From: Oculina patagonica
Taxonomy: Eukaryota
Assembly: GCF_052425735.1 (NCBI RefSeq)
Contig: NC_135769.1
Location: 15,562,001 to 15,626,000, forward strand
DNA: 64,000 bases
Reading direction: 5' to 3'
In this document: piece by piece, positions 19,501-25,500 of the stretch
Layout of the letters: each line of letters starts with the position of its first letter
Position numbering within the stretch: position 1 is the stretch's first letter
Program-made: the position numbers and the translations under genes
The notes under the pieces: generated by a model
Told to the model about the DNA's origin: nothing
The model's input: the letters and a program-made list of their open reading frames with translations, nothing else
Databases searched by the model: none

Positions 19501-22500
19501 TTAGTGATTAGTTTCCAATGCTCTTTGGCTCAATTGGAGTTATTGCAAAGCGTAACAAATCCCATCCACTGGCCTATAGCATTAGGCGTATGACTGACGT
19601 CGTCGCCTAAAAATGTTCCAGGCCTGTTCTTTCTTAGAAGTTCTGCATACATTTTACAATTTCTGTAACAGGAACTGAGAGTGGTGCATCCCCAAGAACA
19701 AGTCGGAAAGCAGCAATGAAGAAAAGTCTCACCAAGTACACTAATCTGCTGTTCCATTCGACCCCAAAATTTGCCAGGCACCTAAAAAGGTATATATTGT
19801 ATGCTTGATGCTCTTTTTAGTTTTGTATTATGCCTTCCTTGCAAAGCTGGAGGATTTTTATGCACCTACCGTCCTTGAGTTTTGTTCATGGGACAATAAA
19901 CAGCAGGGATGGATCCAGGATGGACCAGTTGTGGATACCAGTTGTACTAGAAAGCCGCAGGCCATCTCAGAGAGGGGGGGTGGCACAACCCCCTGCACCC
20001 CTTCCCCTTGATCTGCCCCTGTACCGTGTATTCTCACAATGTCTCTCTCCACCCATGTGTATGTAGATACAAAAGATCACCAAAAGATCACCAGCAAAAT
20101 GCTATGAATAATTTGTGATAGATTAGCATCCCATCCCTGGAGTTTCTATTTGTTTCATTTGACTAAGACTGGAGTTAAACAACACCATATGTTAACCACT
20201 AGAAAACAAACATCTTTTCTACTTTTCCTAGAACTTTGTAATAATGGTGATTGCCCTAAAATTTGTGACGGCATGGTGTTGTCTCGATTAATTTAACATT
20301 TTGACAATTATTTTTCTCAGAGGTGTATACCTAGCTTGTCTGTTATTCACTGATGATGACAAGCTACTTGTAACCTTGGATGAAAATATCCCCATCATCG
20401 AAGTGGATGATAACCACCCAAGTACCTTCCTTCAAGACTTCTGTTGGTTAATGAAGGTATACATGTGCTCTTGTTTCTCCTTCTTCTTAAGGCCACCAAG
20501 GTTCCAGTTTGATGAGTTTTATACTTAATGCCAAAATGGAAAAGAAACAGATAAGCCAGAAAGTACTGCTTGTTAGATATGGGGTCACACTCTGAGAGTT
20601 CACCCAAAAAAATAAGATAGGTTGAGTGGAAAGGGCGAAAATATACTCCAAAAGATGTTCTACAAGGCTGCAAATTATTATTTTATGCTGAAAATACATA
20701 TGTCAACTAAGTCACCATTTTGGTTGGATGAAACGAAAATGTGGTCGCCATCGAACATTATTTTATATTTAAAACTGTCACAACATTCAAGAGAAGCACC
20801 GACTGTTATTTGCAGTCCTTTTCTATAACTTTTGGTCTTTGGGTAACAGTGTGAACTATCCTTATAGGTATCTGAAAAGAGAGGTTCAACTACCAACCTC
20901 CATTGATTTGTAAATGGAATATCATTATCTTGATTACATTTACCATTTTAGGTTGCATGCACTTGGAAAGATGTAAAGAAGTTAAAGCTAGAAGTTGAGA
21001 AAAAGTCATCATCAACATCGGTCCTCTTTAGATGTAAATTGCTCCAAGCTGCTGATTCTCTGCAGGTAGGGCTCTTAAATCACTCCTGAGTGCAGGGGTT
21101 TAAAAATGTTTGGAGTAGGCATCAGCCAATGGAAGAGTAGGCGGCTGTGACACCTCTGAGTTGTTTGGTGCAAGCTGATTGCTTTAACCAGAATAACTGG
21201 CAACACATAATTGAGTTGCCGGTGGAACTCCAGCAGTCACCGGCTTGTTTTGAAAACCCTGTAAGTGCACTGGATTAAGGCCTACACTGCTAATCTTTTT
21301 CTCCTATTAAATAATGTTGGACCTATAGCAAACAAAGCAAACTGATCAAAACAAAGATTATGAAAACAAACGTTCATCATAAACCTATTTTCATCCCCTC
21401 TGAGATAGAATACAAGAGATAAAAGTGCAGTGATGACATACTACAGAGATACATCATTGCATTTTATTGGCTGAGAAACAATCCATCAGATACATTGCAT
21501 GCTTCACTGTTACCTACAGAGTGCTGGGTCACCAGTCTGACTTTGTCTCTTGTGGAGGTTACCGATGCCGATGTGGATCTAAGAGATGTTGATAAGGTTG
21601 ACATGCTTCAGACCATGACACACAATATTCAAAAATTTAATTCATTTCACCATTGCAAATTAATCCTGCCTCATTTGTTCTAGGGTGTTCTTGGCAAGCA
21701 AGACCTTGGAAGACTTCATTATAAACCTGTTAAGGACAGGAATGGAAGCACTGTGATTGTTGCTGTAAATTATGTTATTGTAAGTATTTTAAGAAAAACG
21801 ACAATTTTTTTAAGTTTCAAAGACATGTTTCGACAGAGCATCTGTCATCTTCAGTTGAAAGGTTTACAAAGCACAGTGAGTTGAATAATAAGTAGAAAAA
21901 ATGCTAATTAAGACAAGTAGTAACAACGGAACGTGAAAATGTGTGAATTAGAAGGATAATTTTAGATTTACATGGTGTAATTGCTGATTGAGGCAAGGTA
22001 GTTCCTTTTGAATATGGATAGCCTCCTTTATCTTAAGTTGAAAGCTGGTAGAGGCGTGATCTAAAATATGAAAGCAATCTGTTGAACACAAGGAGCGACA
22101 GCGTTCAGAATTCTGAAGGTGTTTGAAAATGTGGGAGGCCTTATCACTGGCTAAGTGCTCACGCACGCGTGTGGCAAAATGTCGGGTGGTTTCGCCGACA
22201 TAACAGGCATTACAGCCCGCACATGCAAACTTGTAAACCACACACGAACGGAGACCGCCAGGGATAGGGTCTTTCACTCCAAAAAGATTACCGATCTTAA
22301 AAGAAGAAAAAACTAGTTTGATATCTAAATCATTACAATAGCGCTTAATTAAGTGTCTAATCTTTTTCTGAGTGACGACAGAAAAATAGCCTACGTACGG
22401 CAGCTTAAAGTAAAATGTGGGCAAAGTAGTAGGGAGGGAGCCCCGGGGACAATGGTTGCTATGGATACCAGTGATGTAACGGTTAACTACCTTTTCAATT

Positions 22501-25500
22501 AAATGGGCAGGGAAAAGGTTCTTTTTTAGAATTTCAGTAAGCTTGGTTATGTCCTCGTGTAACCCCAACCAGGTGTTATTGATCTTGTAGGCCCGGTCGA
22601 CAAGAGTTCTAATGAGACCTACTTTGTACGAGTACGAGGTGAAGCTAAAATAATTAGTTAATAGCCCAGTATTAGGTTTTCTTGCGGTAAACTCTAGTAA
22701 GGAAAGAATTAGGGTCATTATTATCGATAAGAACATCAAGAAAGGGTAATTGGCGATTAAGTTCTTTTTCCATGGTAAACCTTATGTTAGGGTGCCTAGA
22801 GTTAATGTAGTTAAAAAATACAACAGCATCGTGCTCCGAGTGAAATAAACAAAAAGTGTCGTCAACATACCTACGATAAAATAAAATTTCAGACCCTTGA
22901 AAATTTTCCAACCATAGTTTTTCATGATGCCCCATAAAAAGATTTGCTAATACGGGAGCAAGGGGAGACCCCATGGCCACGCCTTTCTATGACCAAATTG
23001 ACGGCGTGGCCATGGGGTCTCCCCTTGCTCCCGTATTAGCAAATCTTTTTATGGGGCATCATGAAAAACTATGGTTGGAAAATTTTCAAGGGTCTGAAAT
23101 TTTATTTTATCGTAGGTATGTTGACGACACTTTTTGTTTATTTCACTCGGAGCACGATGCTGTTGTATTTTTTAACTACATTAACTCTAGGCACCCTAAC
23201 ATAAGGTTTACCATGGAAAAAGAACTTAATCGCCAATTACCCTTTCTTGATGTTCTTATCGATAATAATGACCCTAATTCTTTCCTTACTAGAGTTTACC
23301 GCAAGAAAACCTAATACTGGGCTATTAACTAATTATTTTAGCTTCACCTCGTACTCGTACAAAGTAGGTCTCATTAGAACTCTTGTCGACCGGGCCTACA
23401 AGATCAATAACACCTGGTTGGGGTTACACGAGGACATAACCAAGCTTACTGAAATTCTAAAAAAGAACCTTTTCCCTGCCCATTTAATTGAAAAGGTAGT
23501 TAACCGTTACATCACTGGTATCCATAGCAACCATTGTCCCCGGGGCTCCCTCCCTACTACTTTGCCCACATTTTACTTTAAGCTGCCGTACGTAGGCTAT
23601 TTTTCTGTCGTCACTCAGAAAAAGATTAGACACTTAATTAAGCGCTATTGTAATGATTTAGATATCAAACTAGTTTTTTCTTCTTTTAAGATCGGTAATC
23701 TTTTTGGAGTGAAAGACCCTATCCCTGGCGGTCTCCGTTCGTGTGTGGTTTACAAGTTTGCATGTGCGGGCTGTAATGCCTGTTATGTCGGCGAAACCAC
23801 CCGACATTTTGCCACACGCGTGCGTGAGCACTTAGCCAGTGATAAGGCCTCCCACATTTTCAAACACCTTCAGAATTCTGAACGCTGTCGCTCCTTGTGT
23901 TCAACAGATTGCTTTCATATTTTAGATCACGCCTCTACCAGCTTTCAACTTAAGATAAAGGAGGCTATCCATATTCAAAAGGAACTACCTTGCCTCAATC
24001 AGCAATTACACCATGTAAATCTAAAATTATCCTTCTAATTCACACATTTTCACGTTCTGTTGTTACTACTTGTCTTAATTAGCATTTTTTCTACTTATTA
24101 TTCAACTCACTGTGCTTTGTAAACCTTTCAACTGAAGATGACAGATGCTCTGTCGAAACATGTCTTTGAAACTTAAAAAAATTGTCGTTTTTCTTAAAAT
24201 CTTTACGTGTCTGCTGTTCTCAAGACCTTTTGTTATTGTAAGTATGTGCAACTAATCAAGACAAGTAATGGTGTGTCCTAGTAAACCATTATTGTAAGCT
24301 TTCTAGAGAAGGGGAAGCATTGGGCATGGACTATGAAGAAGAGTCTTGCAGTACCTCCCTTCACTCGGTTGTAATTTTCTACCGGTATTTGTTTAAGAAT
24401 CCTGGAAAACATACTGTGTGGCAATTCTGTGTGCACTAACCTTCCTCCATAGAGGGAGTAGTAACCCAATACCCTTCATACTAGTAATGATACCCTGATC
24501 CAGGGTCAATGTGGTGCTGATGCTGAGATACCCGTCTACTTGACTTTCTTCTAAACAGGAAAAAGTAATTTACCGCTAGAGATTAAAGAATTGAATGTCA
24601 ATGGCTTTTTTTCCTTCACCCTGACTAGCATGCCAGTTCATTTAAGCCACGTATCATGTCTCTCAAGTGGTTGTCCTTGAACAAACTTCAGAAGAAGGTT
24701 CAGACTGCTCCACTGCAGGCTGGGTTACAGGACGAGTTGTTCTCTGCATCAGAGATGCTTGTGTCCTCCGTTCAGGTGAGAGAAGAAACCACTAAACAGC
24801 GCTAGACACTTTAATGCTGTTTTATTCTGTCACATTGAAGAATGATTTCCTTGTTTGAGCCCTACAACTGGCCTTTTCTGAGAAACACAGTGGCCTAATG
24901 GTTAGTGCACTGGACTCTGGGTTGAGAAGCCTGGGTTTGAGCCCTGGCCTGGGTCATGTCTTCCTGGGCAAGACACTTTGCTCTCACAGTGTCTCTCTCC
25001 ACCCAGATGTAAAAATGGGTACCAGCATATTAAATGCTGGGCATAAACCTAACCCTATCCCCCACCCATGGGCAAGGAACTAAGCATAAACCTGCAGTGG
25101 ACTAACATCCCTTCCAGGGGGGTAGTAGAAATACTCCTGGTCACTTCATGCTACAGTAACCAAGATAAGCTCTGGTGGTATGGGCCACCTGGCCTGACAT
25201 AAACTTTACTAGCATTCTGCAGTCTAAATTGACTTTTTTGGAATTAAGTGTTATGGGGATTTGAAACAAGAAATATTCAGTCAGTGTTACATCCTTTGCC
25301 TGTAAGGTATCACAAGATGTCTGATTTATTTTATGATTAAGGTTAGCACTGCACTTAACTATCTTTTCGCTGAATTAACTTTGATTTATGTTTGATCTTA
25401 TAGGAGAAGATACATTACTATGAAAACAGTAAAAAAAGCCTCGAAAGGTAAGAGTTTGCAGTAGCTTACAGGGTTGAAATGGGTCAGGTAATGGTCAGGG

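Follow-up and report, generated by a model that had tools for sequence, protein, structure and literature searches.

A very young Penelope-like palindrome beside an ANKFN1 splice donor in Oculina patagonica, probably the product of a single retrotransposition

We analyzed a 64-kb stretch of the genome of Oculina patagonica (contig NC_135769.1), referred to here as the window, on which all coordinates are based. An intron of the gene ANKFN1 in this window contains a near-perfect palindrome whose two arms are copies of an endonuclease-bearing Penelope-like element (PLE). The family to which these copies belong was searched for across the 529-Mb assembly. On the basis of the assembled sequence, the palindrome is very probably genuine and the result of one very recent retrotransposition of this element. 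This interpretation draws on the structure of the palindrome, the variants carried by its arms, and the rules followed by other insertions of the same family.

An automated repeat search placed the arms at 21780–22983 and 23003–24206, each of 1,204 nt, with 19 nt between them. When the arms were compared base by base, only one internal mismatch was found (21928, paired with 24058). The next mismatches were located at 21784–21785/24201–24202, and the true arms are therefore 21786–22983 and 23003–24200, each of 1,198 nt. These results agree with the original prediction, which described a near-perfect palindrome of ~2.4 kb with arms of ~1.2 kb, a 19-nt gap, and a single difference. Chance cannot account for so long an inverted repeat. 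The left arm (21786–22983, minus strand) is an inverted, 5'-truncated, and tail-less PLE copy that is antisense to the host gene, and the right arm (23003–24200, plus strand) is a PLE copy in the sense orientation. The 19-nt loop (22984–23002, plus strand) belongs to the right copy and forms its 5' end. The frame read in the right arm runs on through this loop (FYDQID), so that the right copy just extends 19 nt further in the 5' direction. A tail of 30 nt (24201–24230, plus strand) follows the right arm only and has no partner on the left, where the arm terminates at approximately family position 1217 and overlaps the adjoining target-site duplication by 2 nt (AT microhomology).

The entire structure is bracketed by a direct repeat of 15 bp, and the sequences outside this repeat are unrelated to each other, so that the flanks are unique and not mirrored. 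The left copy of this target-site duplication (21773–21787) consists of the last 7 exon bases followed by GTAAGTAT. The right copy (24231–24245) is an identical 15-mer and therefore contains a second GTAAGT, a decoy donor, at 24238. The insert between the two copies, including the 30-nt tail, corresponds to 21788–24230.

The identity of the element was examined in the remnant reading frame at 22985–24038 (plus strand), which comprises the end of a reverse transcriptase, a linker, and a GIY-YIG endonuclease, and is interrupted by a stop at 23312–23314. Longer genomic copies have this frame as well, and in other copies it runs uninterrupted from the reverse transcriptase into the endonuclease. 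The 113-aa reverse transcriptase remnant matched Pfam RVT_1 with an E-value of 2.3e-6 and a score of 27.9 bits, which falls slightly short of the cut-off of 29.6 bits, and the match to Pfam GIY-YIG (E = 0.0037, 18 bits) was also under its cut-off of 22.6 bits. The motif VVYKF...YVGET...R..EH was readable in the GIY-YIG part of the arm translation. The profile support for GIY-YIG is weak, and it is the order of the domains, reverse transcriptase followed by GIY-YIG, that is diagnostic. The canonical PLEs (Penelope/Poseidon, Neptune, and Nematis) have the same single frame with a C-terminal GIY-YIG domain (PMC8557442). By this reading, the insertion is a 5'-truncated, endonuclease-bearing PLE. 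The assignment to the Penelope-like class and the presence of an inverted 5' partial copy, both of which had been proposed from the DNA letters, are borne out by these domains and by the inverted, 5'-truncated partner in the left arm.

A putative minimal type-I hammerhead motif can be read at 24126–24171 (plus strand), consisting of helix I (6 bp), CUGAAGA, helix II (5 bp), GAAAC, and the palindromic ACAUGU. This motif has the same form as the metazoan PLE hammerheads, which share the minimal type-I structure, are located near the 3' end of canonical PLEs, and gave no detectable cleavage as single motifs (PMC4209133). In an Rfam search with E-values up to 10, no hammerhead model scored the motif. 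Its antisense copy is located at 21815–21860, and the sense motif would sit inside the 1.2-kb duplex of the host pre-mRNA, where pairing should block the ribozyme fold. Rfam matches were also obtained at the center of the palindrome; these were generic hairpin matches to microRNA models, all below the gathering scores, and were discarded as meaningless.

With the right copy as a query, at least 60 matches were found in the assembly. A pattern of the 30-nt 3' end identified at least 112 family 3' ends (57 forward and 55 reverse), and the tail pattern was found at 83 ends genome-wide. Among 100 listed 3' ends, 19 head-to-head pairs no more than 3 kb apart were present, accounting for ~40% of the listed ends, and no tail-to-tail pair was seen when these ends were counted by eye. 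Exactly one arm was tailed in 27 of the 29 pairs having both 3' ends, and the untailed arm stopped at family position 1215–1222. The exceptions were L056, a complex cluster in which both arms are tailed, and L059. Which of the arms carries the tail was independent of which arm extends further in the 5' direction. The 30-nt tail sequence was identical in every tail-bearing copy, indicating that the tail is part of the element and not of the target. Duplications of 10–15 bp were found around whole pairs at no fewer than 12 loci (15 bp at the locus described here and 10–13 bp at 11 other pairs).

This family-wide pattern matches the published hallmarks of PLE insertions. Strong 5' truncation, an adjoining inverted 5'-truncated copy, a tail of 30–40 bp that is often present at one end only, and a duplication of variable length have been described for the canonical PLEs, although the mechanism by which PLEs integrate is still undefined (PMC8557442). 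The locus is therefore a typical PLE insertion, and its architecture is not new. It does not differ in kind from canonical PLE insertions; for an inverted pair, it is uncommonly long and symmetric, and a splice donor happens to fall within its duplication.

Next to the family-wide pattern, the arms themselves record the age and origin of the insertion. Arm-to-arm identity over 14 sampled pairs ranged from 87.6% to 99.9%, and the lowest divergence was that of the present pair (1 of 1,198 nt), consistent with the earlier view that the insertion is very young. The nearest other family copies differed from this insertion by only 2–6 substitutions, indicating very recent activity of the family. Among eleven insertions sampled, three variants (23313, 23314, and 23495) were private to this insertion, and both arms carried all three. 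The stop at 23312–23314, a position at which the frame is intact in all other copies, is created by two of these variants (23313 and 23314). These results indicate that both arms were derived from one template molecule, or that one arm was derived from the other.

At the sole difference between the arms, T is present in the right arm (24058) and in all ten other family copies compared, whereas C is present in the left arm (21928). The left arm thus holds the derived state, and the T-to-C change generates a CpG. The original prediction had taken this difference for a CpG transition, but the direction was wrong, and decay of a methylated CpG is ruled out as its cause by the T in the ten other copies. 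The C in the left arm may be a copying error made at insertion or a single later mutation.

We propose that an AT-rich site was cut in a staggered manner, by chance across the exon-intron junction, which would have generated the 15-bp duplication. One RNA template would have given rise to the 1,247-nt 5'-truncated copy including the 30-nt tail, and the same template would have yielded the inverted, tail-less copy, which starts 19 nt further in. The most likely route would be strand switching by the reverse transcriptase, either by copy-back on its own cDNA or by a jump to a second cDNA of the same template. The loops of other pairs are relevant to this proposal. Across ~30 pairs, a small group of loops (19, 19, 19, 16, 13, 11, and 1 nt, where the loop of 16 nt was given as 0 by the automated repeat search) and a broad group of 36–441 nt were found, and no loop of 20–35 nt was seen among them. 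The small loops and the shared private variants suggest a strand switch just behind the growing end (copy-back) or a jump to a second cDNA of the same template. A loop of exactly 19 nt was found in three independent insertions (22984–23002 here, L012:2577-2595, and L026:1482-1500), at three different positions of the element. The recurrence, for which p is ~0.05 as a post-hoc estimate, could be a weak lead to strand switching by the PLE reverse transcriptase at a fixed distance.

Alternatively, each of the two cut strands may have primed on a separate RNA, with the two independent cDNAs joined afterward and the 19-nt offset arising by coincidence. This explanation accords with the unequal arms of most family pairs, whose offsets are 36–441 nt, and with the locus L024 (G000:C7:25034712-25035753), in which an inverted fragment of family positions 245–551 abuts a direct copy of positions 528–1247 in the classic layout of twin priming, here within a PLE. 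In contrast, the three private variants present in both arms make two unrelated RNAs improbable unless a single source copy outside the sample gave rise to both, and small loops are over-represented (≤19 nt in 7 of ~30 pairs, three of them exactly 19 nt). We therefore consider independent cDNAs an unlikely origin of this palindrome. In twin priming, or 5' inversion, of L1 elements, the inverted 5' part also arises from target-primed reverse transcription, and one duplication surrounds the insertion. In L1, the inverted segment and the direct part do not overlap, the former being upstream of the latter, whereas both arms of the present palindrome span the same 1,198 nt. Twin priming is excluded at this locus by the full overlap of the arms.

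We then turn to the host gene, for which the exons of ANKFN1 were compared one by one. The exon at 21684–21779 (plus strand; 32 codons, phase 0) ends at a splice donor and was 80% identical to residues 616–645 of Nematostella vectensis ANKFN1 and 88–97% identical to short coral fragments. The 1,178-aa Nematostella isoform maps collinearly on the plus strand from 10684 to 31312, and its alignment continues in the next exon at 24629–24775 (plus strand; 49 codons). In Pfam searches with single exons, only a weak ankyrin match was obtained. The five top matches of the exon search, all of them giant proteins of repetitive sequence that matched over many short stretches, were discarded. The intron between the two exons (21780–24628, plus strand) has a length of 2,849 nt; its donor is GTAAGT at 21780 and its acceptor is AG at 24627–24628. 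The insert and one copy of the duplication account for 2,458 nt, leaving a pre-insertion intron of ~391 nt. The placement within an ANKFN1 intron just past the donor, as had been claimed earlier, is upheld, with the insertion beginning 6–8 nt after the donor.

Because the duplication spans the last 7 exon bases and the 8 intron bases that follow them, an intact donor was kept beside the exon, and the gene could still be spliced. The decoy donor (24238–24243) is 2.46 kb downstream from the genuine donor. In the sense arm, a strong pyrimidine tract followed by AG is present at 23671–23690, and a cryptic exon could run from there to the decoy donor; the stem would probably mask such an exon. The coral fragment P0007, which reads through the donor, gave a weak alignment (E = 1.7) with the sequence to the right of the insert, a hint of an empty site in a relative and not evidence when taken alone.

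The RNA of this region was also folded in silico. For the RNA of 21684–24330, ViennaRNA predicted a free energy of -2,321 kcal/mol with 1,203 in-register pairs from 21780 to 24206. If ANKFN1 is transcribed, the intron RNA would fold into a stem of ~1.2 kb, a possible substrate for ADAR or Dicer. In the genome, four places code for ADAR-type deaminase domains, and a Dicer dimerization domain is also encoded. In Acropora millepora, hyper-editing by ADAR is abundant, and 34.8% of regions with hyper-editing have a nearby match in reverse orientation (PMC5850803). Intronic inverted pairs edited by ADAR, such as inverted Alu elements and the hyper-edited regions of corals, likewise form double-stranded RNA (dsRNA) from oppositely oriented repeats in pre-mRNA. 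Such pairs are usually two separate and diverged insertions, whereas the present palindrome is perfect and would have come from a single event. As a proposal, the formation of dsRNA at this locus appears reasonable and has precedent.

A further step would be that the palindrome in the ANKFN1 pre-mRNA is a hairpin source, driven by the host promoter, of small RNAs that silence the still-active PLE family. Such a locus would be the cnidarian counterpart of maize Mu killer, a derivative of a DNA transposon whose hairpin RNA, transcribed from a flanking host promoter, causes proven heritable silencing. The two loci resemble each other in carrying a partial inverted duplication of a transposon. The perfect 1.2-kb inverted repeat in an intron, oriented in the host-sense direction, and the Dicer and ADAR-type domains in the genome are in line with this idea, as is the frequent hyper-editing near reverse-oriented repeats in the coral described above. 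In transformed Drosophila melanogaster, a rearranged Penelope also contains an inverted duplication of the element body able to form dsRNA, and small interfering RNAs (siRNAs) were observed exactly on the inverted regions; however, these siRNAs do not silence Penelope efficiently (PMC3681739). The present PLE has the long inverted duplication of both of these; unlike the Drosophila copies, it would be transcribed from the host promoter by way of the intron. Many other inverted pairs exist in the family, yet near-identical young copies persist, which argues that the family is not silenced. Furthermore, ADAR editing counteracts Dicer processing and would oppose the production of small RNAs here. 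Taken together, a silencing function of this hairpin seems improbable to us.

The palindrome had also been proposed to be a cruciform-prone fragile site. Two other short-loop palindromes of the family, with arms of ~570–600 nt and arm identities of 98.6% and 93.8%, have persisted in the genome. The survival of these older pairs contradicts strong instability of the palindrome and argues against strong fragility.

Assembly artefacts are known to include long palindromes that are nearly perfect and have short loops, and a fold-back (mirrored) long read or a mis-join would mean that the palindrome is absent from the animal. PLE arrays, moreover, cause trouble in assemblies (PMC8557442). Such an origin is scarcely credible at this locus, because the flanks are unique and not mirrored, a direct 15-bp duplication encloses the entire insertion, the left arm has the 3' end of the element on its outer side, an arrangement that fold-back of a single-arm insertion cannot yield, the tail is present on one arm only, as in 27 of 29 other pairs, and the arms differ at one base. 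Mirror flanks, a lack of target-site duplication, and identical arm ends, by which a fold-back is recognized, are not seen here. The duplication on unique flanks, the one-sided tail, and the rules of the family make a fold-back artefact very unlikely, in support of the original prediction, which had already judged a mirrored read improbable.

Some observations weigh against the interpretation as a single retrotransposition by strand switching with a dsRNA-forming product. The 19-nt loop belongs to the tailed arm here and in L012 but to the untailed arm in L026, so that simple copy-back fails as a full explanation in the latter. No second haplotype of the site was found in the assembly; each flank, used as a query, returned short dispersed repeats only. 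In addition, intronic hairpins may simply be degraded together with the lariat.

The locus is ordinary in itself, being one more insertion of a known class of retroelement with a textbook architecture. Its value lies in a very clean natural record of PLE integration, which is provided by the near-unmutated arms, the shared private variants, the sharp 15-bp duplication, the one-sided tail, and the 19-nt loop. If the intron is expressed, the locus would be a test case for how corals handle a perfect 1.2-kb intronic dsRNA, whether by editing, by dicing, or not at all, and would show whether splicing tolerates a stem that begins a few bases past the donor.

Several further features were observed in the course of these searches. 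L056 (G000:C1:48699800-48701100) and L005 form a cluster of fragments 100% identical to the element, with three 3' ends (two inverted, one direct), each carrying the tail. The cluster adjoins a 1.2-kb copy and constitutes a very young complex array. Both flanks of the present locus (21092–21267 and 24878–25050) contain dispersed repeats ~170 nt long that number in the hundreds to thousands at 78–84% identity and look like SINE or MITE elements. Finally, identical PLE insertions with the same flanks were found ~200 kb apart at L044/L046 (G000:C13, 6.32/6.55 Mb) and at L047/L048 (G000:C4, 29.77/29.96 Mb), which points to segmental duplications that took place later than those insertions.

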